DNA of 64,000 nucleotides from Camelus dromedarius (taxonomy: Eukaryota), in contig NC_087436.1 of NCBI RefSeq assembly GCF_036321535.1, positions 121,706,001 to 121,770,000 of the forward strand, written 5' to 3'. The translations under genes and the position numbers were made by a program. Every line of letters starts with the position of its first letter. The first letter of the stretch is position 1. The notes under the pieces were generated by a model that did not search any database, had not been told where the DNA came from, and saw nothing but the letters and a program-made list of their open reading frames with translations. Below are positions 2,760-47,460 of this stretch, one piece after another.

Positions 2760-5700
2760 CTTTTTTTTTTCCTTTGGGTATAATTGACATACTAGTTTTT
2801 CAGGAGTGCAACATAATGATTTAATATTTGTATATATTATGAAATGACTATCACAGTAAGTCTAGTTAACATCCACTAATCAATTTTTGTATGTTTCATC
2901 ATCCTTGCATTCCACAAAAAAAAAAATCCCACTTGGTCATGGTGTATAATCCTTTTAATATGTGCTGAATTTTGTCTACTACTATTTTGTTGAGAATTTT
3001 TGCATCAGTGTACATAAGGGATGTTGGTNNNNNNNNNNNNNNNNNNNNNNNNNNNNNNNNNNNNNNNNNNNNNNNNNNNNNNNNNNNNNNNNNNNNNNNN
3101 NNNNNNNNNNNNNNNNNNNNNNNNNNNNNNNNNNNNNNNNNNNNNNNNNNNNNNNNNNNNNNNNNNNNNNNNNNNNNNNNNNNNNNNNNNNCAGTTCTAG
3201 AGCTTTTTTTTGTTGGGAGATTTTTGATTACTGATTCAATCTCCTTACTAGTTAGAGATCTATTCAGTTTTTCTATTTCTCTGTGATTTGGTCTTGGTAG
3301 GTGTTGTGTTTCTGAGAATTTGTTTCATCTAGATTATCCAATTTGCTGGTGTACAATTGTTCATAGTATTCTTTTTATAACACTTTTTATTTTTGTAGAA
3401 TTGGTAGTAGTGGGTCTATTTGTATTTCTGATTTCAGTAATTTGAGTATTCTGTCTTTCCTTTCATAGTCTACCTAGCTAGAGGTTTATCAATTTTGCTG
3501 ATCTTTTTGAAGAACCAATTTTTGGTTTCATTGATTTCTGTAGTAATTTTTCTGTTCTTTTTCATTTATGTCTGCTCTGATACTTATTTTTCCTTCCTTC
3601 TGCTAGCCTTGGGTTAGGTTGTTCTTGTTTCTCATTCTTTAAGTTGGAAGTTAAGTTGTTGATTGGAGATCTTTCTTATTTTTTAACGTGTTTATAGCTA
3701 TAGATTTTCTCCTTAACATTGCTTTCACTGGATCCTGTAAGTTTTGGTACATTTTTCACTTTTCTCTTAAGTATTTTCTAATTACCTTGTGATTTCATTT
3801 ATCTCTTAAGTATTTTCTAATTACCTTGTGATTTCTTTGATCCTTTGGTTAAAGAGTATGTTTTTAAATTTCCACAATTTTGTGAATTTTCCAGTTTTAC
3901 TTCTGTTGTTGATTTCTGACTTCATCCTGTTATAGTTGGAGGAAATACTTTGTATGATGTTGACCTTTTAAAATCTGTTGAGACTTACTCTGTAACCTAA
4001 CATATGGTCTATCCTGGAAAATGTTCCATGTACACTTGAGAAGAATGTGTATGTTGTTGGATAGAGTATTCTGTACATGTCTGTTAGATCTAGTTGATTA
4101 ATTGTGTTGTTCAGGTCCTCTATTTCCTTACTTATAGTCTGTTTGGTTGTTCTATCTATAATAGTGAGGTTTTGAAGTCTCCAGCTATTATTGTAGGGTT
4201 GTCTCTTTCTCCCTTCAATTCTGTCAGTTTTTGCTTCATATATTTTGCTGGTCTGTTATCAGGTGCATCAGTGTTTATAATTGTTATATTTTCTTGATAT
4301 ATTAAATACATCAATATATAATGTGTAATATATTCTTTGTTTCTTGTAACTTTTTTTGAATTAACCTTTTTTGAATTAAAGTTTATTTTGTCTGATATTA
4401 ATATAGCTCCTCCTGTTCTCTTTTGGTTATTAGTTGCATGGAATATGTCTTTCATCCTTTTACTTTGAATCTATATATGTCTTTGGATCTAAAGTGAGTC
4501 TGTTGTTAGACAGCATATGGTTGAATCATATGCTTTTATCCATTCTGCCAATCTCTGTCTTTTAATTGGAGATTTTAATCTATTGACATTTAAAGTAGTT
4601 ACTGATAAGGATGAAATACTTACGTTATTTTGCTATCTGTTTTCTGTATGCCTTATACCATTTTTTTATTCCTTATTTTCTGCTTTACTGTCTTTTGTGT
4701 TTGGTTTTTTATATGAAATATTTGAATTCTTTTCTCATTTCCTTTTCTGTATATTCTGTACCTGTTTGTGTGTGTGTGTGATTACCGTGGGAATTACATC
4801 TAACATCCTAAAGTTACAGCACTAATTTGAATTTATGCCAGCTTAACTTCAATAACATACAGCCCTGAACCATCCCTACCCCTTTTGGTTGTTGATGTTA
4901 ATTCACAGAATTAAATCTTCATATATTGTGTGCCCTCAAATATAAACTAATCTTTTAAATGTATTAGTCTCCTAAATCATGTGGGAAATAACAGGTGGAA
5001 CTACAAACCAAAATTACAATAATACCAACTTTTAGACTAGTAATTTTTGAAAAGTATTTTAGCCTCATATCATGTAGAAAAGAAAAAAAATTGAGTTATA
5101 AAATGTTGTTGCAGTGATTCCAGCTTTTATCATTGGCCATGCCTTTACCTTTATTGGCATCTTCATTTCCTCATGTAGCTTTGAGGTGTGGTCCTTTGAG
5201 TTAGTGTCATTTCATTTCACCCTACAGGACTCCCCTGAGTGCTTCTTGTACGGCAGGTCCGGTGGTAACAAACTCTCTCAGCTTTTGTTTATCTGGGAAT
5301 GCCTTACTTTCTCCCTCACTTTAAAGGACAGTTCTGTCTTCTTGGTTGACAGTTTTTTTTCTTTAAACACTTTGAATGTATGGGCCCACTGCCTTCTGGC
5401 CTCCAGAGTGTCTGATGAGGCTGCTGATAATCCTGTTAAGGATCCCTTGTCTGTGACCTGTTGCTCCTCTTGCTTTTTTCAAGATTCCTCTTTTCATCTT
5501 TGGCTTTCTGAAGTTTGATTATTATGTGTCTTGGTATTGGTCTTTTGGGATTCCTCTTAGAGTTTATTGAGCTTCTTGGATGTTTATTCTCATGTCTTTC
5601 ATCTAATTTGGAAGTTTTCAGCCATTGTTTCTTCAAATACTCTTTCTGCCCCTTTCTCTCTTCTCCTCAGGCTCCCGCAGCGCGTGTGTCGCTCTTCTTG

Positions 5701-11698: not shown

Positions 11699-11986
11699 GA
11701 AATCGAGCGACTTTCTGAGCAACTAGAAGAAAAAGAGAGGGAGACACAGCAGCTGATGAACCAGCCAGAGTGTGAGCGAGAGAGGGAAGTGGCCCTGCTG
11801 AGGAGAAGCGTGGAGGAGAAGGAACGGGCCCGGGCCGCCAGCGACATTCTGTGCCGCTCCTTGGCGGATGAGACCCATCAGCTGCGAAGAACTCTGGCTG
11901 CTACTGCCCACATGTGCCAGCATCTGGCCAAGTGTCTGGATGAACGCCAGCGCGCACAGGGGGACGCGGGAGAGAGGAGCCCTGAG
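11699..11986 (+). CDS. TNIP2: TNIP2 (ABIN-2) coding exon 2
   Basis: ctag|GAA ATC GAG...CCT GAG|gtaggc, 288 nt, phase 0/0. Translates [96 protein letters not shown], recognisably human TNIP2. Confidence 0.97.
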
Positions 11987-13980
11987 GTAGGCCGTGGTGG
12001 AAGCAAACTGCAGTGAAGACCTGGGTGTGGCGGGAGGCCTTGCCTTGCACTTTGGGACCCCTGGGCTGTCACGGAGGTCAGGGCACCCAGAGCCCACTTG
12101 TGTTCTTGATAGTGAGGGTCAGCTGTTGGGGCAAAGCCTGCCCACCCAGGGATTTCTTCTAGAATGGCGGAATGTGCAGAGGTGACAGGAAAGCAGATGG
12201 CTTGTGTCACCAGCTGCCCCACCCAGACCCGTAGCTGATCCTGGGCCCAGGTGGGAAGACGCAGCTGAGGACGACGCAGGCAGACTGGGGCAGGAGGGGC
12301 TGTGCTGAGTGTGGGGGGGGGGCAGGTGGGGAGACCACAGACTGAGGCGCGGGGTGGTGCCTCCAGGTGCTGCCCAGGCAGGGGCTGAGCCCCAAGCGTC
12401 TTGAGATCTGTGAGCACCAGACATCGGGGGCACCACGTGTCTGAGCAGAGCAGGGCTGGCGTAGCTGGGGCTCTGCCACGGGGCTGACACTGGCATCTCT
12501 GCAGCTGGCGCTTGGGTACGTCCTCGCAGCAGCACGGCCTGCCGCTGTCGGGCGACCTGGTCATCCTCATCAGTGACATGAGGACAGAGAGCCCCTCCAT
12601 GCATCTGTGACCCCTGGCCAGGTGCTGCGCAGGGGCAGGGGACAGTGGGGCCAGGTGTCAGGTGGGCCTCCACCACAGGTTGGATCTGGGCTGTGGCTTG
12701 TGTGGGGGCTGGTGGGGGAGGGGACAGTGTGGGTTTCAACGTCAGGAATCCCATTCCTGAGAAACCAGGGGCTCCTGGGCGGCAGGGTGGCGAGAACAAC
12801 TGGGCTGAGGCCACCTTCCCTGCCTATCTTCTTCCACCCGACCCCAGCCTGTGCCCGTGGGACAGACAGGGAGACAGGCATGTGGTGCACTCCCCTCCCA
12901 GGCTACCCTCCTGCAGGTCCTTTCCAGGCAGTTCTCTGAGGCTACGCCAGGGTTGACACAGAAATGTCCTCTGCGACGTCGGGGGCGGATGGGCCACCCA
13001 GCCCGTTAGCAGCAGCTTTGCTGGGGAGCCCGCTGGGGAGAACCTTGGTCTGAGAACCACCTGTCTCAGCTGGGTGGATTCCACGAAAAGGGAACCTCAG
13101 AAAGAACATAGCATATTTCAGAAACCAAAGTGCTTTCTGGGAGGAGGCGGTGTTCTTGTCCGATTTTGAGTCACTGTGTCATTTCCCTCTGCAGATTTGA
13201 AAGCAGTCACACGTCACGGCTGGCCTGGGCAGGCTTGGGGCCGGAGGCTCTTAGTAGTCTCCAAATCAGCGTCACTTCTCAGCCCTGGGCTGGCTGAGTC
13301 ACCCGGGGTTTCCCGGGGCCTGCTGGGTAGGATGTGTAGTTCCTTTGTCATTAGAGGGGAATTCTCAAAAATAATGTCACCAACGTACAGCCCACTGTAC
13401 TGTTAAATGCACTGAATTTCTAGGGTTCAGATGGACTTTTCAGAAGATCTTGGGTTAGTTCTGCCCACCAGATAGGGTTGGTTTGGCTTGCGGCTTTCTA
13501 GGCTGAATCCCCGGCCCTGTGTGAGGCACAGGTCAGAATTGCTGAATTTGACCCTGATGGTCTGCAGCTTGATGGAGTCGTGGGTTCAGAGGGAGTGAGC
13601 TGGGTCCACGGCCAGGCCTGCTCCTGGCGGTTTTGTGGCCCTGTGTTGGGATGTTCTCTGGTGTATAATGGGATTAGGCTTCTGCCCGCCTGCCCCCTCT
13701 GAGGATGGAAGATCTCAGGTGATGGGAAGACTGTGTGGCCTGGCCCCAGTGTAGTGTGGGCTGGGCCAGGGCGAGGGCGATGACCCCTCCCTCTTACTTT
13801 CAGGAAGCTGCAGGTCCTTTCCTGTCTCCATCTTACTTCTCTGTGGAATGAACGGCTGCCATCTGCCACGTTGCAGTGCCTGTCTGCCACCTCGATGTCC
13901 AGTTGTGACTTCCACCTCTCTTGCTGCAGCACGTGACAGTCATGTTTGCTGACTCGCTGTCTGGTCTTTGTCCCTTTCTT

Positions 13981-16900
13981 TTTTTAGCTCTCTTTATTCT
14001 TTTTCATTATAGGGACTACAAGCCATTGAATATAGTTCCCTGCTATACAGTAGGGCTTTATTGTTCATCTATTCTGTACACAGTAGTTTGTATCTGCCAA
14101 TCCCAAACTCCCAATTTGTCCCTCCCTCCCCCTTTTCTCCCCTGGTAATCCTAGGTTTGTTTTCTATGTCTGTGAGACCCTCTCTTTTGTAAATAAGTTC
14201 ATTTGTGTAATTTTTTTTAAAGATTCTACATATAAGTGATATCATATGACATTTGTCTTTCTTTGACTTACTTCACTTAGTATGATAATTTCTAGGTCCA
14301 TCCATGTTGCTGCAAGTGGCATTCTCTCATCCCTTTTTATGGCTGAGTAGTGTTCTATTGTATATATACCACAACTTCTTTATCCAGTCATCTGTCGATA
14401 GATATTTAGGTGGCTTCCATGTCTTGGCTACTGTAAATAGTGCTGCTGTGAACACTGGAGTGCATGTATCTTTTTGAATTAGTGTTTNNNNNNNNNNNNN
14501 NNNNNNNNNNNNNNNNNNNNNNNNNNNNNNNNNNNNNNNNNNNNNNNNNNNNNNNNNNNNNNNNNNNNNNNNNNNNNNNNNNNNNNNNNNNNNNNNNNNN
14601 NNNNNNNNNNNNNNNNNNNNNNNNNNNNNNNNNNNNNNNNNNNNNNNNNNNNNNNNNNNAGNNNNNNNNNNNNNNNNNNNNNNNNNNNNNNNNNNNNNNN
14701 NNNNNNNNNNNNNNNNNNNNNNNNNNNNNNNNNNNNNNNNNNNNNNNNNNNNNNNNNNNNNNNNNNNNNNNNNNNNNNNNNNNNNNNNNNNNNNNNNNNN
14801 NNNNNNNNNNNNNNNNNNNNNNTGATTGGGTTTTTGTCTTTTTGATATTGANNNNNNNNNNNNNNNNNNNNNNNNNNNNNNNNNNNNNNNNNNNNNNNNN
14901 NNNNNNNNNNNNNNNNNNNNNNNNNNNNNNNNNNNNNNNNNNNNNNNNNNNNNNNNNNNNNNNNNNNNNNNNNNNNNNNNNNNNNNNNNNNNNNNNNNNN
15001 NNNNNNNNNNNNNNNNNNNNNNNNNNNNNNNAGAAGGCACGTCCAAAAAAAATATTGCTGAGATATATTTCAAAGAGTGTTCTGCCTATGTTTTCCTTAG
15101 GAGTTTTATAGTATCCAATTTTACATTTAGTTCTTTAATCCATTTTGATCTATTTTTGTATATGCTGTTAGAGAATGTTCTAATTTTATTCTTTTACATG
15201 TAGCTGTCCAAGTTTCCCAGCACCACTTTTTGAAGAGACTGTCTTTTCTCCAACATATATTCTTGCCTCCTTTGTCANNNNNNNNNNNNNNNNNNNNNNN
15301 NNNNNNNNNNNNNNNNNNNNNNNNNNNNNNNNNNNNNNNNNNNNNNNNNNNNNNNNNNNNNNNNNNNNNNNNNNNNNNNNNNNNNNNNNNNNNNNNNNNN
15401 NNNNNNNNNNNNNNNNNNNNNNCCTGGTTCCATTCTTCTTTCTCAAGATTGTTTTGGCTATTCAGGGTCTTTTGTGTTTCTATACAAATTTAACAGNNNN
15501 NNNNNNNNNNNNNNNNNNNNNNNNNNNNNNNNNNNNNNNNNNNNNNNNNNNNNNNNNNNNNNNNNNNNNNNNNNNNNNNNNNNNNNNNNNNNNNNNNNNN
15601 NNNNNNNNNNNNNNNNNNNNNNNNNNNNNNNNNTCCATTTGTGTTGTCTTCAGTTTCTCTCATCAGTGTCTTACAGTTTTTGTAGTACAGATCTTTTGCC
15701 TCCCTAGGTGGGTTTATTCCTGGGTATTTTATTCATTTTGATGCAGTAGTAAATAGGATTGCTTCCTTAATTTCTCTTTCTGATATTTCATTGTTGGTGT
15801 ATGGAAATGCAGCAGATTTCTGTGTATTAATTTTGTATCCTGCAACTTTACCAAATGCATCAATGAGCTCTGGTAGTTTTCTGGTAGCATCTGTAGGATT
15901 TTCTGTGTAGGATTTCTCATGTCATCAGCAAACAGTGCCAGTTTTACTACCTCTTTTCTGGTTTGGATTCCTTTTCTTTCTTTTTCTTCTCTGATTGCAG
16001 TGGCTAGGACGTCAAAGACTATGTTGAGTAAAGGTGGTGAGAGAGGCATCCTTGTCTTGTTCCTGATCTTAGAGGAGATATTTTCAGTTCTTCACCGTTG
16101 AGTATGATGTTCGTTGTGGGTTTGTCATATGTGGCGTTTATTATGATGAGGTGTGCTCCCTTTATGNNNNNNNNNNNNNNNNNNNNNNNNNNNNNNNNNN
16201 NNNNNNNNNNNNNNNNNNNNNNNNNNNNNNNNNNNNNNNNNNNNNNNNNNNNNNNNNNNNNNNNNNNNNNNNNNNNNNNNNNNNNNNNNNNNNNNNNNNN
16301 NNNNNNNNNNNNATCCTTGCATGCCGGGAATAAATCCCACTTATAGTATATGATTCTNNNNNNNNNNNNNNNNNNNNNNNNNNNNNNNNNNNNNNNNNNN
16401 NNNNNNNNNNNNNNNNNNNNNNNNNNNNNNNNNNNNNNNNNNNNNNNNNNNNNNNNNNNNNNNNNNNNNNNNNNNNNNNNNNNNNNNNNNNNNNNNNNNN
16501 NNNNNNNNNNNNNNNNNNNNNNNNNNNNNNATTTTTAGAATAGTTTCAGAAGGACAGGTGTTATTGACTCTTCTCTAAATATTTGGTAGAATTCGCCTGT
16601 GCCATCTCATCCTGTCNNNNNNNNNNNNNNNNNNNNNNNNNNNNNNNNNNNNNNNNNNNNNNNNNNNNNNNNNNNNNNNNNNNNNNNNNNNNNNNNNNNN
16701 NNNNNNNNNNNNNNNNNNNNNNNNNNNNNNNNNNNNNNNNNNNNNNNNNNNNNNNNNNNNNNNNNNGTATAGTTGCTGATAATTGTCTCTTATGGTCCTT
16801 TGTATTTCTGTGGTGGCAGTTGTAATTTTTTTTTTTTTTCATTTATGGTTTTATTGGTTTGGGTCTTCTCTCNNNNNNNNNNNNNNNNNNNNNNNNNNNN

Positions 16901-19900
16901 NNNNNNNNNNNNNNNNNNNNNNNNNNNNNNNNNNNNNNNNNNNNNNNNNNNNNNNNNNNNNNNNNNNNNNNNNNNNNNNNNNNNNNNNNNNNNNNNNNNN
17001 NNNNNNNNNNNNNNNNNNNNNNNNNNNTATTAACTTTGGGTTTTGTTCTTTCTTTAGTTGCTTTAGGTGTAAGGTTAGGTTGTTTGAGATTTTTCTTATT
17101 TCCTGAGATAAGCTTGCATCACGATAAACTCCCCTCTTAGAACTGCTGTTGCTGCATCCCATAGGTTTTGGATTTTCATTTTCGTTTGTCACTATGTCTT
17201 TGATTTCCTCTTTGATTTCTTCAGCGATCCATTGGTTGTTCAGTAGCATATTGTTTAGCCTCCACATGTTTGTGTTTTTTTGCAGGTTTTTTTTGCTAGT
17301 TGATTTCTAGTCTCATAACATTGTGGTCAGAAAAGATGCTTGATATGATTTCAGTTTTCTTAAGTTTACCAAGGCTTGCTTTGTGGCCCAACATGTGATC
17401 TATCTAGAGAATGTTCCTTGTGCCCTAGAGAAGAATATGTATTCTGCTGCTTTAGGATAGAATGCTCTATAAATATTAAGTCCATCTGGTCTAGTGTGTC
17501 ATTTAGGGCCTGTATTTTCTTATTAATTTTCTGTCTGGATGATTTGTCCATTGATGTAAGTGGGGTATTAAGGTCCCCCAGTATTACTGTGTTACTGTCA
17601 ATTTCTCATTTTATGTCTGTTAACAGCTGCCGTATATACTGAAGTGCTCCTATGTCAGGTGCATATATATTTACAATTGTTATATCTTCTTCTTGGATTG
17701 ATTCCTTGATCATTATGTAGTGTCCTTCATCTCTTGTAACAGTGTTTATTTTAAAGTCTATTTTGTATGATACAAGTATTGCTACTTCAGCTTTCTTTTG
17801 GTTTATGTTTGCACAGAATACCTTTTTCTATCCCCTCACTTTCAGTCTGTATGTGNNNNNNNNNNNNNNNNNNNNNNNNNNNNNNNNNNNNNNNNNNNNN
17901 NNNNNNNNNNNNNNNNNNNNNNNNNNNNNNNNNNNNNNNNNNNNNNNNNNNNNNNNNNNNNNNNNNNNNNNNNNNNNNNNNNNNNNNNNNNAATGACATT
18001 TTGTTAATTGTTTTGCATTTGTTTTTGTAGGTCTTTTTTTCCTTTCCTTTTTTGTTCTCTTGTGATTTGATGACTGTCTTTAGTGTTATGTCTGGAGCCC
18101 TCTTTCCTTTTTGTGTGTATCTACTATAGAGTTTTGGTTTGTGGATACCATGAGGTATTTGCGTAGCAGTCTGTATATATACATGCTTGTTTTAAGTTGC
18201 TGATCTCTTCATTTTAAATGCATTACAAATAGTGTGTTCATACTTTCCTCCCCTCACAATGACTGGCTTTGATATTATATTTTACATCGAGTTGTTTTGT
18301 GTATCCCTTAACTGCTTCTTGTAAATACAGATGATTGTACTCTTTTTGTCTTTTAACTTCCCTATTAGTTTGTATGTGGATGATTTCCTTTGTTTACCGT
18401 ATGTTTGCCTTTACTGCTGAGCTTTTCCATTTAGTAATTTTCTTGTTTCTAGTTGTGGTCTTGCCTTTTCCACCTAGAGAAGTTCCTTTAGCATTTGTTG
18501 TAAAGCTGGTTTGGTGGTGCTGAATTCTTTGAGCTTTTGCTTGTCTGTAAAGCTTTTGATTTCTCCCTGGAATCTGAACGAGAGCCTTGCTGGATAGAGT
18601 ATTCTTGGTTGTAGGTTTTTCCTTTCATCATTTTAAATATATCTTGCCACTCCCTTCTGGCCTGCAGAGTTTCTGCTGAAAAATCAGCTGATAACCTTAT
18701 GGAAGTTCCCTTGTATGTTATTTGTTGCTTTTCTCTTGCTAATTTTAATATTTTCTCCTTATCTTTTAATTTTTTGTCAGTCTGATTACCATGTGCCTTG
18801 GTGTGCTCCTCTTTGGATTAATCCTGTGTAAGACTCTCTACACGTCCTGGACTTGGCTGTTTCCTTTCCCAGGTTAGGGACGTTTTCAGCTATTATCTCT
18901 TCAAATATTTTCTCAGGCCCTTTCCTCTCTCTCCCCTCCCTCTGGGACCCCTACAATGTGAGTATTAGTGCACTTGATATTGTCCTAGAGTTCTCTTAAA
19001 CTGTCCTCATTTCTTTTCATTCTTTTTCTTTTTTCTGTTTTGTGGTGGTGACTTCCACTGCTCTGTCTTCCGGCTCACTCATCTGTTCTTCTGCCTCATT
19101 TATTCTACTGTTGATTCCTTCTAGTGTGTTTTTTCATTTCAGGTATGACAGTCTTCAGGTCTCTTTGGTGGTTCTTTATATTTTCTAACTCCTTGTTAAA
19201 AACTTCTAACTTCTTGCTCTGTGCGTCCATTCTTCCCCTGAGTTCGTGGACCGTCCTCGTGATCATTACTCTGAACTCCTTCTTGGGTGGATTTGCCCAT
19301 CTCCACGTCACTTAGTTCTACGGGGGTGGCATCTTGTTCTTTCGTCTGGAACACACTCCTCTGCCACCTCACTTTGTCTAAATTTCTATTTGTATTTTTA
19401 TCACCTGATGGGTTAAGTACATTTCTTGACCTTGGAGAAGTGGCCCTCTGTAGGGGACGTCCTATGCGTCCCAGCAGTACACTCTGCCCTCTTGTCACCT
19501 GAGGGCCAGGAAGCCGGCTGATGCCAGGGTAGGGGTCTGCCCTGCATTTGCAGATTCGGTTTTGCAGGCTGTGGGGTCACAGTTTTCTTACTTCTGGTGT
19601 CTGCCCCCTGGTGGATGAGGCTGGACTAGAGGCTTGTGCAGGCTTCTTGGTGGCAGGGGCCAGTGCCTGCCCACTGGTGGGCAGAGCTGGGTCCTGGTCC
19701 TTTGGTGGGCAGGGCTGTGTCCAGGGCTGTGCCTTGAGGTGGCTGTGGGCCCAGGAAGTCTTTAGGCAGCCTGTCTGCTGACGGGTGGGGCTGTGTTCCC
19801 GCCTGGTTAGCTGTTTGGCCTGAGGCTTCCCAGCACTTAAGCCCACAGGCTGTTGGGTGCGGCAGGTCTTGGTGCTAATGACCCAAGCAAGATGTCAGCC

Positions 19901-20462
19901 AATGAACACTCCCTGATCTGTCCACCGCCAGCTTTTACATCCCCAGGGTGAGCATCAGCTGCCCCCCACCTCCTCAGGAGACCCTCCAAGACCAGCAGCC
20001 AGGCCTGGCCCAGGCTCTTATGCATCACTGCTTTGGCCCTTGACCCTGGTCCGTGTGAGGCTGTGTGCTCTTTCAGAGCACACTCTGTCTCCTCCAGTCC
20101 TGTGGTGCTCCTGCAAGTAAGCCCCGCTGGCCGTCAAAGCCAGATGCTCGGGGGGCCTGCCGGAGCCCTGGGCTGGAGCAGCTGGTACGGAGCTGAGAGC
20201 TCTCGGTGCCGTGGGAGGACCTCCACAGTGCCATTATTCCCCAGCTGCAGTCGCCCACCCAGGGGTGTGGGACCCGATCATATCGTGAGCGCACCTCTCC
20301 TTCCACCCGCTTTGGTTCCCGCTTTATGTCTCCAGTTGTAGAAGAGTTTTTTTTGGTAGGTTCCATCTTTTTTAGTGATGGTTGTCCAGCAGTCAGTTGT
20401 GGTTTTATTGTATTTGTGAGAGGAGTTGAGCTCAAGTTCCTTCTCCTCCACTAGCTTGACAA
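13981..20462 (-). mobile_element. Near-full-length, degenerate L1 (3'UTR, ORF2, ORF1, 5'UTR) antisense in TNIP2 intron 2, bounded by a 16-18 bp TSD
   Basis: ORF2 C-terminus IQKDTCTPVFTAALFTVAKTWK (~14400-14480); [21 protein letters not shown]...LALFADDM (15729..16049) and MGFIPGMQG; EN fragments at 17366-17999; ORF1 fragments at 19105-19498; 5' end near 20460. TSD ggtctttgtccctttctt (13963-13980) versus gatctttgtcccttcctt (20463-20480). Confidence 0.93.
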
Positions 20463-20486
20463 GATCTTTGTCCCTTCCTTAAGCAG

Positions 20487-20576
20487 CCGAAGTGTGCAGG
20501 TGGGGATGCCTCTGTCCACGCTGTTGTTGAGAAGTTACGGGAAGAAAATCGACTGTTAAAGCAGAAAGTGACTCAC
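20487..20576 (+). CDS. TNIP2: TNIP2 coding exon 3 (alternative NAGNAG start at 20484)
   Basis: ttaagcag|CCG AAG...ACT CAC|gtgagt, 90 nt. Translates PKCAGGDASVHAVVEKLREENRLLKQKVTH (human SEHTDGHTSVQSVIEKLQEENRLLKQKVTH). Confidence 0.95.
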
Positions 20577-21056
20577 GTGAGTGTCTGTAATACTTAACAC
20601 GGGAAGAGCCTCCCCGTATGAACCGCAGGTGCGGGCCCTCTCCTCGGCTGTGCCAGGGTTCCCGCTGCCCTCGGGCCAACTTGGCTGATACACATAGTCC
20701 CCAGAGATCCGATTTTTGCTAAAAGGATGCACACAACACGCCTGGCCATCCTCCACCCCTCCATGATAGTTCACATGTTGATAAATGAGGTACAAGAATT
20801 ACCATCAAGGATAGCCTTTAAGGCAGAAAAATTGCTGCAGGTTTACTTCTGCTTAAGGTGGTTGCTGGTGGCCATCGTCACCGTGTCTCAGGTTTGTCTG
20901 GCGGTCTCAGTGGCCCCTCTGCACAGAGCAAAGGCAACTTTAATTTAAAGGGAAAACTCACCCAGCTCATTATTGCTAATAAATAGCCCCGGGGTGAGCA
21001 CTGGCTTAGAGCAAATGTCTCAGCCGCCTTCACCAGGAGCTTGTCGGCCTCTTCAG

Positions 21057-21323
21057 GTGGAAGACCTCAATGCCAAGTGGCAGCGCTACGACGCCAGCAG
21101 GGACGAGTACGTGAGGGGCCTCCATGCGCAGCTGCAGGGGCTGCAGGCCCCCCACGAGCCTGAGACACCCTCTCCGCCCGAGCTGATGAGGAAGGAGATC
21201 TCCCGGCTCAACAGACAGTTGGAGGAGAAAATAAACGACTGTGCAGAAGTGAAGCAGGAGCTGGCGGCCGCGAGGCGGGTGCGGGATGCTGCGCTGGAGC
21301 GCGTGCAGATGCTGGAGCAGCAG
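21057..21323 (+). CDS. TNIP2: TNIP2 coding exon 4 (coiled coil; CEP55/EABR-like WQRY segment leading toward AHD1/UBAN)
   Basis: cttcag|GTG GAA GAC...CAG CAG|gtgccg, 267 nt. Translates [89 protein letters not shown]. Confidence 0.97.
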
Positions 21324-21487
21324 GTGCCGCCCCTTGGGCTCGGGAGCCCCGCCGTGAGATCGCCCCGTGTCGGGCAGTCTGAGCCGAGGTCTGGGAGGCG
21401 CTGGGAGGCTGGAGAAGTCTGGCGGGGACTTTTCCTTCCTTGAGCAGAAACAGCAGCGTGGTGACAGCTAAGTGTGTCTCCTCTCAG

Positions 21488-21607
21488 ATTCTCGCGTACA
21501 AGGATGACTTCACATCAGAGAGGGCCGATCGGGAGCGGGCTCAAAGCAGGATTGAGGAGCTGGAGGAACAGCTGGCCTCCCTGCAGCCCCGGGCGTCCTG
21601 GAGGCAG
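21488..21607 (+). CDS. TNIP2: TNIP2 coding exon 5 (UBAN ubiquitin-binding core, DFxxER motif)
   Basis: ctctcag|ATT CTC...AGG CAG|gtagag, 120 nt. Translates ILAYKDDFTSERADRERAQSRIEELEEQLASLQPRASWRQ. Confidence 0.97.
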
Positions 21608-23064
21608 GTAGAGCAGGCGGCGCGTCTCCTCCCGCCCAGACTGAGCGCTTCTTTTCTTTTCCTTTCGTGAACTTCAAGCTCTTCTGCGTGTGTCTGCCCA
21701 GACCCTGCTTCCCCACTCTGGGCAGAGCCTCCTTGCCCGGGGCTTGGACTTGGTGGTGGAACCTGTCCACTTCTCCCCATGTTTGTTTGTAGATGGGGTT
21801 GGCATGATGTCATGTGACAGCAGAGGTGGCTGGCCTGGTGCATGTCCTGCACCCAGAGGGCATGTCCTGAGCTCAGGCTCCCTCCTGGGAGCTTCCCGCA
21901 TGCGTGTCTTCTTCTCGCTCTGAGGCAGGGACCCCAGTCACACTGTCACGCAGGTGTGGACACAGAGGCCCCAGGTGTCTGATAACGAGCCCCTGGGCAT
22001 GGAGATCGGCCTTGCAGGCCGGTGGGCCCTGCACCTCACTTTGGGCTCAGTGCTGTCCCCACCAGGGGGCTGCTTCTCAGGACGCCTGGCCTGAGTGGGA
22101 ACTGGAGGTTTCTCCCTGCAGAACCTGCTACCCACATGCCTCCTCTCCTCCCTGGATCTGCTTGGCGTGCTGCAGAAATCTCACGAGAGCTTTGTTTCTT
22201 TAGCTGCTCAGAGTACCGAATACATATTCTGTCCTGGAGCAAACCTTGGGCCCCCCAAAGAGCGTCTGTCCTGACACAGACGGGACGGTGGCGGTGGCCC
22301 TGGGGACCTGTGCACCCCGGTGGGGTGGGGATACTGAGCTGTCCTTGGAGCTGTCCCTCCTGCTCAGTCTCAGGGCGGTAGGAGCTGCCTGCACTGCCCC
22401 GTCCAGCAAAACTGGTGGGCCTTGTTGGTGGCCACAGGAGTGACCAGAGCCTGCTGAGGACTAGGGCATTTGCACTAAGTGGCCTCTGTGTCCCTTTCAG
22501 CTGCAGCCTGTGCCCTCGGGCATTGGGTGCCCTTGCTTAGCCCCTGATGACACCCCATGGGCGGTGGAATTGAAGGTGTGAGCTGAGAGCCATGGCCCCA
22601 GGGAAGAACCAGACTCCCGTGTGGCACAGACACCAGGCCACCTGGAATGAGGTTCCCAAACAAGCAGTGATGAGCACTGGGGCCGCGGTGCTTCGTGACT
22701 GACGTCTGGGCGCGGGTGCCGGCTGGGCCAGAGGCACGTCCTGCTGTCTCTGGAGGCGCCTGGGCCCGCAGACGAGGGCAGTTTGCCGGGCTCTCTGTCC
22801 TGAGCTGTGCCTCCCACTCTCCATGGAGGCGTGTGGGGTGGGTCTCTCAGGCTGATGGGTCCACACACTTCCACCCACTCAGGCCTAACCCTCATGAGCA
22901 CAGGCAGGAGCTCTGTGGCTCCTCAGTCGTTCACTAAGCATGTCCTTGTTTGGGCTGCGGCACCACGCCAGGGAAGGTGCCAGTCCCACTCGGCGACGGA
23001 TATGTCTGCTTGCTGGAGCCCAGGACCAGCCATGTAAGTGGACCCTTCCTTGCCTTTTTTCTAG

Positions 23065-23328
23065 GACTCTCGAGAGACAGGCTCCTGCTGGATTCACGCC
23101 GGGAGCAAAACGCCCAGGCGCTTAGACGCCGGTGCTTCGGAGCTGGCAGCACCTGGTGGCCGGAGGCCTGGGACAGGGTCCCAGCGGCGGGGACTCCCTG
23201 CGGAGCACGGGCACCCCGGAGCGAACCAGAGAGGCCAGGGGGACCTCCAGTGCCCTCACTGCCTGCAGTGCTTCAGCGATGAGCAGGGCGACGAGCTCTT
23301 CAGGCACGTGGCCGAGTGCTGCCAGTGA
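23065..23328 (+). CDS. TNIP2: TNIP2 coding exon 6 (last), C-terminal NEMO-like CCHC zinc finger, stop TGA
   Basis: ttttctag|GAC TCT CGA...TGC CAG TGA. Ends RGQGDLQCPHCLQCFSDEQGDELFRHVAECCQ*; stop at 23326-23328. Confidence 0.97.
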   Translation, partial: DSRETGSCWIHAGSKTPRRLDAGASELAAPGGRRPGTGSQRRGLPAEHGHPGANQRGQGDLQCPHCLQCFSDEQGDELFRHVAECCQ

Positions 23329-23784
23329 GGACCCCAGAACAGGCCGGAGGTGCTTTGGAGCCTTCACCTCGGCCCTCCTCGGCCAGAGGGAACTTCCGGT
23401 GGGGCTGGAGGCAGAGGGGAGGGTGTGAGCGTGTGTGCCTGGGAAGGCCCAGCTTCGCTTCTGATGTGGGGCTCGGTCTCCCAAGCCATCAGGCCAAGAC
23501 CGTGACAGTCTGTGCAGGAACGCCCACAGGCCAGCACGCCAGCCCTGCCCAGCTGTGCCTGGGGGTGCTGCAGCTTGCTGGGAAGAGGTGGGCTGCCGTG
23601 GGGCCACGTGTGTGGTCCCCAGGGTGGAAGCCCCGCCCCCACCAGGAGGCGTGTGTAGCCCAGCACCGTGACGGCACGTCGGCCACCGCAGAGCCCTGTG
23701 TCTGCACTGAAAGACATTGCATTGCAGTGTTTGTTGTGTATCCGGAAGATACAACTCATTTATTTCACATTTACTTATTTTTAT

Positions 23785-24215: not shown

Positions 24216-26711
24216 ACAAAGCTGGCTCCCAAGCGCACGTTCGTCGCTGCACGGTCTGCACGTCCTGTGTGGAGTCAGCATGAAGGGCTAACGCTGGGAG
24301 CACCTGCTGCCTCGGCCTGCACCGCTCTCGCAGCCTTTCCGTTTACTCCAGCCTCCTCCAGCTGCAGTTCGGGTGTCCCCTCCTCTGTGGGATTCCCCGA
24401 GCACCCGTCTTGCCAGGAAACCAACTGGAAGCGATCAGGCTGTGTTGTGAGGTGCTATCACTGCCACAGAAAGCCTCCGTCTCACTGCCCTGAGGAGCTG
24501 GAGGAGTTTGCAGAACCCTCGGCACTGGAAATAGCTGGGAGCATCGGAGAGAAGGGAGCCGCAGGAAGGCCGCCCTCATATCCGTGGCCGGCCTCCAGTC
24601 GCGCAGGTTTGGAGTAAGACTGAAAATTCTGGGGCGAGAACAGCAGCTGGAAAGCAGGCCGAGCAGAGCAGGGCTCCCCACGGCTGCGCACTGCCGGGGG
24701 ACGGCTCGAAGCCGAGTCCCGGGAGGTCAGAGTGGCTGCTAAACGCCTGGATTCTCCTCTCAGACCCTCAAAAGGCCGCATTTTAGGGGTAGAGTGGATA
24801 TCCTGGGACAAAATGGAAACAGGCAACCAGCCAGTAATTCACTGCCCTGTTGGAACAAAATCTGGTTTTCTTCAGAAACAGGTAGTGGAATCCAGGACCT
24901 TACACCACATGAACTGCAAGTCCAGGGTACAGTTAAAAAAAAACCCAAAAAACTAGACGTAAGAAATGAAGGATGACGATGCAGACATACACGAGCTAAC
25001 AAAATTCATACCCAGCAGACTGTACTACAAGAAGTAAGTATACAGTGGAAATATTTTAGGTTAAAGGGAAGTGATTCTATAGAAAGGCAAACGAAGGAAG
25101 AGCATGGGAATGGGCAGGTGTGCATGACTCGTGGCCGTTCCGGCAGTAACGTCTTGCGGGTTTAAAGCGTTGCAGACGTGGCTGCAAGAGCTTTCTAGGT
25201 GGGTGTGGGGAGTGTTTCATGAACTTACACAGTTATAAGGGTTTTGCACTGACTTACAGCAGACCGTAATGAATTAAGGAGACAATCTCTAGGGTAACCA
25301 CTGAAATAATAATGAAACTACTGAATTAAAAAGCTAATAGAACAGAAAAATAATGTTTTTATTAATTCAAAGCAAGACAAGTTAGGAGAACTAAAGGAAG
25401 GAGGAAGAGGTGAGAGACAGAAGATAGTTGGCAAGACTGTAGCCTTAAACCCAGCTATGTCATAATTACATTAAAAGTAAACAGACCAAACATTCTGATT
25501 GAAGGACAATGATTGTCACACCAGACGAAAATATGTCTCACCTGTATGCTCATCGCAAAAGATACACTTTAAACGTGGGAACCCGACTGGAACAGATAGA
25601 AGAGGCACACCACACCCACGGTAAACAAGAACACGAGCATGAGCATCAGACAAAGTGGACTTTAAGTCAAAAAATACTACCCGAAGCAGAGCGGCACTGC
25701 ATCATGATACAAGGGCAAGTGTGTCAGGAATACACAACATTCCTAACCTTGTGTAGAGGTAATAATACAAAGCAGAAGAACTGACAAATGTGTAACCATG
25801 GAGGCTTTAACGTACCTAGCTCAGTGACTGATACACAAGCAGGGGAAAAGCCAGGATACAGAAGATTTAACCAACACTATTAATCTACTTGGTCTGATTT
25901 CAAATTTAGAACATTACATCCAACAAAAGCTAACTATAATTTTTTTCAGGTATACACAGAATGCTTATTACCAAAAGAGAGAAGTTTGGTGAACCATAAA
26001 ACAAGTCACAGCGTATTCCAAAAAACAGAATCACTGAATTTATGATCTCTGACTATAGTGAAATTAAACCATATCTCAATAACAGAAAGATAACTACTAA
26101 ATTTCCAACATATTTCTAAACGGTCCATGGGAAAAATAATCACAACGGAGATTAGAAAATATTTTGAGCTGAATGAAAATAAAAATACAACTTGCTAAGA
26201 AGTATGGAACACAGCTAAAGAGATGATTAAGGGAAGTTTCATAGCGCGAAAGGCATGTGTTAGAAATGAAGAGAGGGTAAACTTCAGTGATCCAAGTGCT
26301 CATCGCAGGAAGCTGGGAAAAGGCCTGCAAATTAAACCCAAGTAAGACGGAAGGAAATAGTAAAAGTGAAAGTCAATGAAATAGAAAGCAGAGGAAAAAC
26401 CAACAATGTCAAGAATTAGTTCTTTTACATAGTAATAGAACTGATATACCCATAGCATGACCGATAAGAAAAAAAGAGAAAACAAATGGTTAATGTCAGG
26501 AATGAAAAGGGAGGGACATCACTAGCGATCACTTAGATATTAACAAGATACTTAGAGGATAGTATGAACAATTTATAAAGCTGATAAATCTCACAGCTTT
26601 GATGAAATGGATAAAGTCCTTGAAAAACACAACTTACTAAAACTGGCACAAGAAGAAATAGAAATCCTGAATAGCCCTATTTCCATTAAATAGATTGTAG
26701 GTAAAAATCTC

Positions 26712-27715
26712 CAATCCAAAAATGAGCAGAAGANNNNNNNNNNNNNNNNNNNNNNNNNNNNNNNNNNNNNNNNNNNNNNNNNNNNNNNNNNNNNNNNNNN
26801 NNNNNNNNNNNNNNNNNNNNNNNNNNNNNNNNNNNNNNNNNNNNNNNNNNNNNNNNNNNNNNNNNNNNNNNNNNNNNNNNNNNNNNNNNNNNNNNNNNNN
26901 NNNNNNNNNNNNNNNNNNNNNNNNNNNNNNNNNNNGTTGGTGGGAATGTAGTTTGGTGCAGCCATTATGGAAAACAGTATGGAGATTTTTAAAAAAACTG
27001 TAAATACTTACCTTTTGATCCAGCAATCCCACTCCTGGGTATATAGCCGAAGGGAACTCTAATTTGAAAAGATACATGCACCCCAGTGTTCATAGCAGCA
27101 CTGTTTACAATAGTCAGGACATAGAAGCAACCTAATGTCCACTGACGGATGACTGGATAAANNNNNNNNNNNNNNNNNNNNNNNNNNNNNNNNNNNNNNN
27201 NNNNNNNNNNNNNNNNNNNNNNNNNNNNNNNNNNNNNNNNNNNNNNNNNNNNNNNNNNNNNNNNNNNNNNNNNNNNNNNNNNNNNNNNNNNNNNNNNNNN
27301 NNNNNNNNNNNNNNNNNNNNNNNNNNNNNNNNNNNNNNNNNNNNNNCAATAATGAACCCATCTACAAAACAGAAACAGAGTTGCAGACAGTAAATTTTAT
27401 GGTTGTGAGGGGGAAAAGGGTGGGAAGAGATAAATTTGGGAGTTTGAGATTTGCAAAGGTTAACCACTGTATATAAAAATAGATTAAAAAAATTTCTTTT
27501 GTACAGCACAGGGAACTATATTCAGTATCTTGTAATAACCTTTAATGAAAAAGAATATGAATAGGAATATATGTATAGATATGCATGACTGGGACATTAT
27601 GCTGTATGCCAAAGATCGACACATTGTAACTGACTGTACTTCAATAAATAATTTAAAAATCCACCTATTTAATAATGAGTTTCTAAACTCATTATTAAAA
27701 AAAGAAAAAAAAAAA
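26712..27715 (+). mobile_element. Young 5'-truncated L1 (camelid-like 3' end) with A-tail
   Basis: ORF2 C-terminus WWECSLVQPLWKTVWRFLKKL. The 3'UTR reads gataaatttgggagtttgagatttgc...gcatgactgggacattatgctg...gtaactgactgtacttcaat. A-tail at 27697-27715; possible short TSD aaaaatctc/aaaaacctc. Confidence 0.85.
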
Positions 27716-30480: not shown

Positions 30481-32622
30481 GTGGATCCGAACAGTCAGGA
30501 ACTGCCTGGGGTGTAGTTACTCCCACCCGTCACTCTGTCTTTGAGACAGTAAAACAGTACGAGCTGTGGGAAGTTCTTTCATCTCCTTTAAAACAACGTA
30601 CTAATGAAACTAAGCGCTAACCCTCGCTGCCGTGATATGGTTTTTAACGGATGCGTGTGTAGGCGGAGTTCAGTAAAAGGACATTTGAACTGCTTCTCTT
30701 CTAGCTGTTACTTTATTTCATCTGAAGATGACTCAGCATCGTGACCTGCGTGAGGTTCCCCCGGAGGCGGACCCCCAGGAGCAGGACTCGGACGTCCCGC
30801 AGGCACAGCTGGGCCGCAGGCACAAGTCCCCAGCTCGGCTGTGCTGAGGCCTGGGCCCGCCCCCGCGGACCGAGAAGGGCTGAGCTTGGGCGTCTCCCTC
30901 TGCCCTCCACCCACCTCGAACCCCTCAGCGGTCCTGAGCCCATCCTGATAACTGGACTGGTCCAGGGACGTGCCCTTGAGGAAAGATCCAGAACGCTAGG
31001 GCTGGGGCTTGCACGATTGGTGGGGCTTGCAGGAATCTGGGTCCGAGGGGCCAAGAGTCCAGGTGGGCCAGCAGGCCTGGGCGCTGGGCAGAGCAGGGCC
31101 GTGGAAATGGCAGGTGGGGCCCCCCAGGGGGCTGAGTGGGGGGCGCCCAGGGACCCTTCACCACTCGGGGCTCTGAAAGTCCCTGCTCACAACACCGCTG
31201 GGGGCCTGCGGTTCTCCTCAGCAGCCAGAGTGGCCCCACAGACAGGGGAGCCAAGGCCCGAGGTGGGCTGAGCCCTGGCAGGACCTGGACTGTCCATGGG
31301 GAGAACAGGCCCCACCCGGGAACCCCACCCTTGCTCTCACCACGAGGCCCGGCTTCAGGGTCCTGGGGGACGCGGCAGGGTCTCTGCCACTCCGCGTGGT
31401 CGTGGCGTGGTCTCAGCTTCTCCCTTTGCAGATCACTCTCCCACCCAGAGAAAACAGAACAAGCAAGCCAGCCTCTCGACCCCACTTCCCCTCTGCCTAC
31501 TGGTCCCTTCCCTGCTCCCTGCAGACCAGCTTCCTTGGGCTCCGGTCAAGGTCACCTCAGCACTGGAGCCCCATGGCCAGTCCCTGGGCCTCAACTTGAC
31601 CCCAGCAGCCCCATCCCGGCCATTCTCTCCCTGTTCCTCCACCTCCAGGATGCCCTCAACCATACCTGCCTCTGACGCCTGGTTCTGGGGCTCGGAACTG
31701 TCCTGTCTGCATTGCGGGCTGGTGAGCTGAGGCTTTCTGTCCCAGGGGCCAGACACTTCACCCGGGTGTGTGATGGGCGCCCCAGACTCCCCCCTTCCAG
31801 GGTGCACACCCCGTCCGCCAGGGAGCCCTGTGGCTCCAACTGCCAGGATGTCTCCAGAGGCCAGACCTTTGCACCCTCTCTCTGGCTAAGAGCTGGGCCA
31901 GGCACATCTCCACTCACCAATGGGCCCTCACACGTGCACAGAGGCAGGTTTACAAGAGGCTGGGGCAGTGGGAGCTACGGAGTGTTCTAGGGGCTGAGTG
32001 GGAGCCAGACCACAAACTGCCAACAGCTCAGAAGGGGCCACGCTGGGGTTCCTTTTTCACTTTAGGTACCATTCACCTTATTGCTAATTTATACCTAGTT
32101 AAATATTTGTAGTTTCTCACTGTTTTATTAGGGGTCATGAACCCCCCAAAACTGGATGGGCACCTGCCTACAGGCCCCTACATAAGCCCAGCCCATGACC
32201 CACTCCCCTCTTTGCACTGCCACCCTCAGCTCCCGAGGTCTGAATGCAGTGCTCCCCGCTAGGCCTTCCTCGACCACCCCGGAGGGACTGCCTCCCGGGC
32301 CCCCCACCCCACTGTGCTCTCGGCCCTCCCCACTGCAGCCCGCTGAGGCTCTGGTGGGGCCTGGGCCTGTGTGGCTCGCCAGGGCCCCAGACAACCTGCT
32401 GAATATGGAGGACAGTGAGGGCACCGGGAACCCCAAGCCACTGCTGGGGTGACCCGGGGATGCTCCGGGGCTGGTGGCCTGGGTTCCCCTTGGGGGCACA
32501 GCCGCCAGCCTGCCCGCCCGCCCCCTCCCTGCCACACTCCCCGGCGCCCCCAGCAGAAAGCAACCAGACGAAGTCTGCTGCTTGTACTAATGTATTCCAT
32601 CTTTCAAAAAGAAAGACATGAT

Positions 32623-45100: not shown

Positions 45101-47460
45101 TGACACCAGAGTCCATCTGGAGTATGAACACACACAGAGCCTCTGAGAGCAGCTAACTCAGTGTGAGAAGGCACTTGAACACACAGAGGAAAACGCAAGT
45201 TTAGGGCAGTACGAGGTGGCACTATGAGTCACCAGGGAAAGGGGAAGTTTTCAGTAATTGGTGCTGGGACAACTGGTCAACCATTTCGAAAAGGATAAAA
45301 CCATTCAGGCATCACATGATACACAAGCATGAACTCCAGATAAATGTACCAAGGAGTTAAGTGGAAAAAAATGAAACCACGCTTACACAGAAGAAAACTT
45401 GGGCACATTCCTCAGAAACCTTAATGTTAGCGTAAAGCTTTCCAACAATTATTTAAAATCCAGAGGCAGTAAAAGATCAATGAACTGACTATATAGAAGT
45501 AAAAACTAAAATCTGTGCATAGCTAACAAACATCAAAAACAGAGTCAGAAGACAGCTCAGGAACTGGGAGGATGTGCCTGCAGCATGCGATGCAGTTAAA
45601 AGGCTAATAGCCCCAATTTATAAAAGACTCTTAAAAATGGAAGGAAAAGGACCAAAAACCCAATTAAAAAATGAGAAAATGACAGAATAGAGAATTCACA
45701 AAAAAAGATACAGAAACAGCCCTTAAAAACATGACCTCACTGTAATGAGAGACAAATGCAAATGGAAACCACAGGACAGGCCCGCCCAGCAGGCGGGCCC
45801 CAGGGGCAGAGCCCGACAACGCACCGTGCTGGGGAGTCTGTGGGAAAACCGCGCTCAGACGCGTGGCTTCCGAGGCCGGCGACACCAGCAAAGCCTGCCG
45901 CGCTTCCCTGCGGCCCCGCACCCCGCGTGTGCCACGGCACCGAGTGTGTTCACAGAGACCACGACGCCTGAGCGCTTGTGCGGGAGTGGGCGACTGTGCA
46001 GCGGAGCCCACGCACACCTGCACCCTGAGGAAGAGCTGCCTGGGTGGACGGGAGGGCCTTCCAGAGTCAGAAGCCGGGAGGCAAAGAGGTCTCTCTGCCA
46101 CCTCTTGCGTAAAAGAAGAAAAGCAAGTAGGAAGCCCAGTAGGAATGGGACGGGGAAAAACATCAGGGTTAAGGGAGGCAGACAAAAAACAAGAGGGAAA
46201 ACAAGCAGAACGGGAACCTGGCTGCATGTCCGAGGAGCACCCGCGACAGCACCAAACAGGCGGTAATAACGTGAAGGCCCTCTGGGGGAAAGAGCTAATC
46301 CGGGCCCCTTGACCACCTCATCCCCTCAGGCTACAGACAACGGACCGCGTACAAGCACACAGCAAGTGCGGGTGCAGGCGGGCAATCCCGAGTCCCCCCG
46401 GGATGCACCCCAGGACCGAGCAGGTCAGGAAACAATGGACAGCGGGAGCGGACAACGGGGCCCACGAGGAGCGCGGTGGTGCTGGGTCAGGGCTACGGTT
46501 GCCAGCGTTAACTCGGATTTACTACGGAAATGAGACAGAGACACAGATGTGTGCACAGTGCAAGCATGCATGCACACACACCTCCTCCTAGGCTCTGCCA
46601 GCTGAGAAGGCCTGGAAGCAACGACACACCAGTAGCACCCAGGCCTAGTCTCACCGCCGCTGTCCAGCTCGTGAGCCTGGGACACGCAGCCACCCAGAAG
46701 GACAGGAGTGCTCAAAGGATGACCGGGCGGAGCAGCCATCCTAAGGGGGCTCCCACTGATGGACTCTGGGACAGTCAGAGCATCAAATCCACAGCGTTCA
46801 TAAAGGACCACAGTCTATGGCACAAAGTAAGAATGTGTGAATCCACCCTCATGTAAATAACAGAATGAATAAAAAAAGACCACGAGGAGAAGGCAATCTT
46901 TTCGTACAGAAGCCAGATAAGAAACGTAGAAAAAATGTTGGAAAAATCACCATTTGGCCAACAACACAGCAGTACCCACTCGAGGTAAGAACCGTCTATG
47001 GATGCTTGCCCTGCGGGCACACGACCAAACACGAGACACCTCTCCCCACAAGACACTTGGGCGTCACAGGCCAAGCGCTACACTGGCAGTAGAGAGACTG
47101 GGCGGACACCCCCGTGGCCCAGGATCAGCCACCCCTGACACAGCTGTGCCCCTGACACCGCTAACGCGGGCCCACCCATCGCTGCCACGGCGCCGCCAGA
47201 CAGGGGTATCGTGTCCATGTTAACCTCCTGATTCTGACACCTGTACTGTGGTTTTCTAAGAGTGTCCTTATTTTGAGGAATCACACACTGAAGTATTTAA
47301 GGGTCAAGGGGCACCACGTCTGAAACTACTCCATCTGGTTCAGAAAGGTGACGGGAGGGGAGAGGACAGAGCGAGTGTGGGGCCGTGCCACTCGGGGCTG
47401 GGAGTGCACAGGACTCCTCGGTACTCTTTCTTGCAGCTTCTGGGACGTTTAAAATTACTC
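42150..47460 (+). mobile_element. Fragmented old L1M (L1MC-like) relic from 5' region to 3' end
   Basis: A-rich ORF2 text, e.g. aaaacctctgacaaaattcagtgtctattcc and ggtgctgggacaactggtcaaccatt, plus an L1MC-type 3' end at 47200-47460. Confidence 0.7.
44529..44828 (+). mobile_element. MER33 (hAT-Charlie) DNA transposon relic nested in L1
   Basis: ttctagtggccacatt...aaaaagaaacaggt...tcatttcaacatgtaatcaata...ttacattctttttttcatactaggtc matches the MER33 consensus as I recall it; degenerate TIR ends (ctatcca / tggacag). Confidence 0.8.

Follow-up and report, generated by a model that had tools for sequence, protein, structure and literature searches.

Poly-T carried by antisense retroelements can serve as the pyrimidine tract of cryptic acceptors, as in the exonization of Alu and L1 sequences, and tandem acceptors of the NAGNAG type form another known class of splice site. 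Close to existing exons, fixed transposable elements are depleted and the fixed L1s that do lie there are mostly antisense; among 10,134 full-length intronic L1s of the human genome, 7 lie within 20 bp of an exon, and 2 of the 7 are at acceptors (PMC3088655). When Alu elements insert de novo into the AG or the pyrimidine tract of an NF1 acceptor, in turn, the exon that follows is skipped (Wimmer et al., 2011; PMC3219598). Here we describe an antisense L1 in intron 2 of the TNIP2 gene of camelids, directly before exon 3, as found in a 64,000-nucleotide (nt) stretch of the Camelus dromedarius genome (NCBI RefSeq assembly GCF_036321535.1, contig NC_087436.1, positions 121,706,001 to 121,770,000 of the forward strand; “the window,” from whose first base camel coordinates are counted).

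The TNIP2 element resembles the human L1s near acceptors in being longer than 5 kb, antisense, fixed and no more than 20 bp from an exon on the acceptor side, and differs from them in its distance of 3-6 nt and in sitting between the putative ancestral branch point and the AG; replacement of a branch point at the two human acceptor L1s is not discussed in that study (PMC3088655). With the NF1 Alu insertions it shares target-primed reverse transcription (TPRT) at a T-rich/A site in a pyrimidine tract, a duplication, and the same place of insertion. Those insertions, however, are pathogenic, with exon skipping (PMC3219598), whereas the TNIP2 L1 has become fixed throughout a family, in whose annotated products the exon is kept. 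Like other NAGNAG acceptors, the AAG-CAG before camelid exon 3 comes with two annotated isoforms one Gln apart; unlike the class in general, it is camelid-specific and lies directly at the L1 endonuclease nick. The left junction of the element is reminiscent of Alu and L1 exonization, in that poly-T and an AG behind the original branch point make a strong-looking acceptor, but only weak donors lie behind this acceptor, which is predicted from the sequence. The locus is a rare case of an already known kind, and no new class of biology.

Taking the evidence as a whole, we consider it very probable that a near-full-length L1 inserted antisense into the acceptor of TNIP2 intron 2 on the camelid stem, that the pyrimidine tract was duplicated in the process, and that the branch point of exon 3 is now L1-derived.

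L1 insertion at the exon 3 acceptor

TNIP2 lies on the plus strand of the window, and its intron 2 spans 11987-20486 (8500 nt), with the L1 making up 6482 nt (Table 1). The original prediction for this DNA had taken about 6.5 kb of the 8.5-kb intron to be one antisense L1, inserted through L1 endonuclease between two 18-nt copies of its target that agree at 16 of 18 positions, the right copy standing directly before aagcag and exon 3. All of this was borne out: the measured length is as given above, both copies lie where they had been placed and read letter for letter as proposed, and every hallmark of an insertion by L1 endonuclease and TPRT is present, together with an empty site in four outgroups. 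Over its 16-nt core the duplication is identical at 15 of 16 positions. Its length is put at 16-18 nt; if it is 16 nt, the 5' end of the L1 possibly lies at 20464. None of 200,000 composition-preserving shuffles of the flanks reached a match of 16/18, with a slack of 5 nt in either direction allowed at each junction.

On the plus strand, the left copy continues into poly-T and then into the 3' end of the antisense L1, where AATAAA is followed by gagagct and by A5-7 at the junction; a tail this short is what would be expected of an old copy. The right copy adjoins aagcag and then exon 3. From these two junctions it follows that the nick fell on the sense strand at ...CTT/AAG, between 20480 and 20481. 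L1 endonuclease prefers T-rich/AA sites, and the plus-strand site here, CCTTYCTT/AAGCAG, is a Y-rich/AA variant of TTTT/AA. The orientation of the element is also that predicted by TPRT, with the T-rich 3' end carried on by poly-T and the antisense body.

In the mechanism that we propose, the L1 would have retrotransposed antisense into the 3' splice site of intron 2, its endonuclease nicking the sense strand of the gene at ...CTT/AAGCAG, one base ahead of the AAG and four ahead of the CAG, and a staggered second cut duplicating 16-18 nt of the pyrimidine tract. The acceptor AG would have kept a pyrimidine tract from the right copy of the duplication, with the conserved branch point left 6.5 kb upstream, and the branch point of exon 3 would now lie in the 5' terminus of the L1, behind an L1-derived pyrimidine run.

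Empty site and age of the insertion

A phmmer search with exon 2 as the query found orthologues of TNIP2, and orthologous loci were obtained via annotated proteins for alpaca (L001), pig (L002), goat (L004), minke whale (L005) and rhino (L006). The original prediction had reconstructed an empty site by joining 13980 to 20481, and had called for a comparison of intron 2 between orthologues. In that comparison the site proved to be filled in alpaca and empty in pig, goat, minke whale and rhino; all four outgroups hold the counterpart of 13940-13980 contiguous with that of 20481-20490 at the exon 3 acceptor, without interruption. The reconstructed site is colinear with each of them through the pyrimidine tract into exon 3, in an alignment that also takes in a branch-point-like GTGAC. 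In rhino the left camel flank ends at 47182 and the right flank begins at 47167; in minke whale the corresponding positions are 30686 and 30671. The camel flanks overlap by exactly 16 nt in both species (47167-47182 and 30671-30686), which is the signature of a single-copy target. Intron 2 of pig is 2134 nt long.

Alpaca has the same element with the same junctions (15787/15788 on the left and 22209/22210 on the right) at 95-97% identity, which is also the DNA identity between camel and alpaca over the TNIP2 locus. Since the site is filled in alpaca and empty in the outgroups, the insertion is assigned to the camelid stem; judged from these sequences, it took place after the split from the other artiodactyls and before the split of camel and llama. 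The artiodactyl split dates to about 60 million years ago and the camel-llama split to about 17-25 million years ago. In the copies of the duplication, camel and alpaca have 1-2 substitutions in common, and each of the two species has one further change of its own; these would agree with an insertion on the camelid stem and are far too few to refine the date.

Displacement of the putative ancestral branch point and a candidate replacement

In pig, minke whale and rhino, the motif GGTGAC lies 32-34 nt upstream of the exon 3 AG, within an AG-free zone of 42-47 nt, and this conserved motif is likely to be the ancestral branch point. Its camelid counterpart, CTGAC, lies to the left of the left duplication copy and is now 6.5 kb from the exon 3 acceptor; the 16-18 nt of the duplication contain the pyrimidine tract only, and the ancestral branch point is outside it. 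The original prediction had held that the duplication recreated the pyrimidine tract and that the insertion may have been tolerated on that account. The tract was indeed restored beside the AG, in the form of the right copy, but this restoration is insufficient on its own as a reason for tolerance, as the ancestral branch point was not duplicated with it. Because that branch point stayed with the left copy, any working branch point of the present acceptor must be L1-derived, and the persistence of exon 3 in the annotated product leads to the same conclusion.

The candidate for this role is TTGAC, which is identical in camel and alpaca. In neither species do the 75 nt before the acceptor contain another yUnAy motif; from TTGAC, the distance to the AAG is 24 nt and that to the CAG 27 nt. 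An AG at 20462-20463 follows only 3-4 nt beyond the motif. By the usual scanning rule, an AG 3-4 nt past the branch point is too close for use; beyond 4 nt from TTGAC, the next AG to be met is that of AAG, followed by that of CAG, an order compatible with both acceptors being used. Were the branch point to lie upstream of about 20443, scanning would come to the AG at 20453-20454 before either of them.

On balance, we think it rather probable that a deeply conserved exon of TNIP2, an NF-kB regulator, has been spliced for more than 17 million years with the antisense 5' terminus of a full-length L1 supplying its branch point and some of its pyrimidine tract, and with outright replacement of the ancestral branch point. 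If true, this would be a natural case of a transposon rebuilding the whole 3' splice site of a pre-existing exon, as opposed to creating a new one. Insertions into acceptor tracts normally lead to exon skipping and disease, and fixed full-length L1s so near an acceptor are almost absent from mammalian genomes; the TNIP2 locus is a verified survivor that is available filled, in camel and alpaca, as well as empty, in pig, goat, whale and rhino. This pair combines a duplicated tract and a transposon-borne branch-point candidate with a built-in decoy that keeps the original branch point, and it could show what sequence a 3' splice site needs at a minimum to withstand an insertion of 6.5 kb.

Tandem acceptor and retention of exon 3 in annotated proteins

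Immediately before exon 3, camelids have AAG-CAG where the outgroups (pig, goat, whale and rhino) have atgcag, ctgcag, gtgcag or aactcag, without a second AG. RefSeq isoforms of 436 and 435 residues are found in C. dromedarius, C. bactrianus/ferus and V. pacos, and their sole difference is one Gln between ...RSPE and PKCAGG..., as expected from use of the AAG (exon start at 20484) versus the CAG (exon start at 20487). The camelid RefSeq isoform X1 uses the proximal AAG; non-primate orthologues begin the exon with Pro, like the CAG form. The distance of 6 nt from insertion to exon 3 that had been predicted holds for the CAG acceptor, but shrinks to 3 nt for the proximal AAG. It may be that a shorter distance between branch point and AG activated the camelid-only AAG acceptor, and so added one Gln to TNIP2.

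Exon 3 has an open reading frame, and camel and alpaca agree at 90 of its 90 positions, against about 4% divergence around it; across the wider interval 20451-20589 the two do not differ at all, against an expectation of about 5 differences. All ten camelid TNIP2 proteins in the cluster contain the exon, in versions that start from the AAG and from the CAG, and we infer that it is efficiently included.

Tolerance of the insertion was probably helped by several features: an exon of 90 nt that is in frame and has a good donor (8/9), the antisense orientation of the L1, a duplication that restored the pyrimidine tract, an antisense 5' terminus that brought a branch motif and pyrimidines to a workable distance, and the missing of a good donor behind the decoy acceptor of the left junction.

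Alternative explanations

Several observations weigh against the reading in which a full-length L1 supplied a working branch point to an exon that is still included. The assignment of A20459 in TTGAC as the branch point most likely to be in use is a motif prediction. The 36 intronic nt before exon 3 have no camel-alpaca differences, with about 1.3 expected at the L1 divergence of about 3.7%, and their conservation is not significantly above the L1 background; no extra constraint on the new 3' splice site is evident either, at 1 difference in 100 nt versus 0-12 in the other bins of the L1. Logan-derived proteins included no camelid transcript fragment spanning exons 2-3, the best identity being 88%, and the case for a constitutive exon 3, like that for its two acceptors, is built on RefSeq predicted isoforms and conservation. 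The element has a 5' untranslated region (UTR) of about 1.16 kb and is probably full-length or nearly so. It could be argued that the insertion is real but that another branch point is used, either a non-consensus A such as that at 20450 or one more distal in the L1, or that exon 3 is partly skipped with a change in isoform output. Branch points are degenerate, but the AG at 20453-20454 would take precedence for any that lies upstream of about 20443, and TTGAC is the only consensus motif in range. Skipping would be favored by an acceptor that looks weaker than the ancestral one or the decoy (its pyrimidine fraction is 0.75, and it has AGs at -23 and -32); skipping of exon 3 would moreover escape nonsense-mediated decay, the exon being in frame, and it is the outcome of de novo insertions at such places (PMC3219598). 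Yet exon 3 occurs in every camelid isoform recovered and is perfectly conserved between camel and alpaca; we regard this alternative as unlikely.

The insertion of the L1 on the camelid stem has, in addition, to be distinguished from an artefact of assembly, through which an L1 was misplaced beside exon 3 or sequences were mis-joined under the runs of N. The element does contain ten such runs and repeats are prone to mis-assembly, but runs of this sort can be deliberate masks, and both junctions recur in an independent assembly from a different genus (alpaca, GCA_048564905.1), where the spacing of all unmasked blocks is equal to within 0-6 nt; an artefact is highly improbable. Even less credible is the proposal that the flanking repeats are a chance likeness of two pyrimidine tracts around an L1 that predates the artiodactyl radiation and was lost in the outgroups. 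Both copies are low-complexity and pyrimidine-rich, as this would have it, but shuffles of the same composition never reached their match, and the loss would take four precise excisions, given that the four outgroup lineages each have one uninterrupted copy with colinear flanks.

Predicted decoy acceptor at the left junction

Taken together, the left copy of the duplication, the poly-T of the L1 and a tAG resemble a 3' splice site, which is found in alpaca too. The AG of this decoy is 35 nt downstream of the displaced CTGAC, and the 48 nt before the decoy are without AG. With a pyrimidine fraction of 0.95, against 0.75 for the real exon 3 acceptor, the predicted site looks the stronger of the two. 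The 500 nt past it contain only weak donor-like sites, rated 6/9 in a crude count that gives 6/9 to the real donor of exon 2 as well. Any decoy exon would contain in-frame stops; this includes a cryptic exon of 157 nt bounded by the weak donor at 14144, which is a possible poison exon.

Identity and continuity of the L1

The identity of the element was assessed from its two open reading frames (ORFs), ORF2 on its unmasked parts. Pieces of ORF1 on the minus strand at 18477-18817 match Pfam Transposase_22 (PF02994) and Tnp_22_dsRBD (PF17490), with E-values down to 2.4e-18. The ORF2 pieces gave no match to Pfam at E 0.01; in a search of PDB sequences, the piece at 17609-17827 matches residues 60-132 of the endonuclease of human L1 ORF2p (E 6e-21), and that at 15732-16091 matches residues 657-705 of its reverse transcriptase (E 1e-11). 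Endonuclease and reverse transcriptase pieces are both on the minus strand and stand in the expected L1 order downstream of ORF1. Neither reading frame is intact: both ORFs have many stops and frame changes, and the intron 2 L1 is a dead copy. There is no second copy of its 5'UTR within the window, and a metagenome scan for other copies with a 22-mer from the L1 5' terminus gave 0 matches.

For the ten N runs inside the element, the unmasked blocks of intron 2 were mapped onto the alpaca orthologue, which was used for coordinates and unmasked blocks. All blocks map in order, and over successive N runs the offset changes by 0, +1, -6, 0, +1, +1, -2, 0 and 0 nt; the runs at 17856-17991, 16873-17027, 16617-16766 and 16358-16530, all in the same L1, are colinear with alpaca with an offset change of 0-2 nt. 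Given this colinearity and shifts of 0-6 nt, the N runs are masks of true length in conserved parts of ORF2 and do not stand for gaps whose size is undefined; the element runs through without a break.

The window contains two further, older L1 fragments, at 26650-27620 (plus strand) and 3981-5668 (minus strand), with N masks at 3029-3191, 26734-26935 and 27162-27346 in or near them. At its 3' end, the fragment near 26.7-27.6 kb extends further than the L1 of intron 2, which stops early at an internal AATAAA.

The TNIP2 gene in the window

Exon 2 is 100% identical to residues 94-189 of the Camelus TNIP2 proteins and differs from alpaca in one residue. Exon 1 lies just beyond the edge of the window, and the remaining exons are given with the other features in Table 1.

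Table 1. Coordinates of the L1, of splice-site features (observed and predicted) and of TNIP2 exons in the window.
Feature	Position	Strand	Remarks
Ancestral branch-point-like motif CTGAC (A at 13952)	13949-13953	+	aligns with outgroup GGTGAC
Left copy of target-site duplication	13963-13980 (core 13965-13980)	+	single copy in outgroups
Decoy 3' splice site (predicted)	13965-13987	+	left duplication copy, L1 poly-T, tAG (AG 13986-13987)
Decayed L1, apparently near-full-length	13981-20462	-	ORF1/ORF2 homology, A-tail, colinear with alpaca orthologue
L1 A-tail (read as T)	13981-13985	-	preceded by AATAAA
L1 ORF2 remnant	~14245-18000	-	masked in parts
L1 ORF1 remnant	~18474-19300	-	begins at 19300
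L1 5'UTR	19301-20462	-	~1.16 kb upstream of ORF1 ATG
L1-derived pyrimidine run ttccttctcctcc	20437-20449	+	antisense L1 5' terminus, precedes TTGAC
Candidate replacement branch point TTGAC (A at 20459)	20456-20460	+	within last seven bases of L1 5' terminus
Right copy of target-site duplication	20463-20480 (core 20465-20480)	+	present pyrimidine tract of exon 3 acceptor
Tandem NAGNAG acceptor AAG-CAG	20481-20486	+	camelid RefSeq isoforms of 436 vs 435 amino acids
TNIP2 exon 2	11699-11986	+	96 codons, phase 0 at both ends, donor GAG/gtaggc
TNIP2 exon 3	20487-20576	+	30 codons (31 with start at 20484), donor CAC/gtgagt
TNIP2 exon 4	inside open frame 20949-21440	+	
TNIP2 exon 5	inside open frame 21383-21667	+	
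TNIP2 last exon	inside open frame 23065-23325	+	

For the part of the locus from exon 3 onwards (20487-23400), eight RNA-labelled runs filed under “reproductive system metagenome” contain 85-87% of its words. Because words from introns are included, these runs are uninformative on splicing; their content points to the presence, in these libraries, of host DNA or pre-mRNA from a closely related Camelus.

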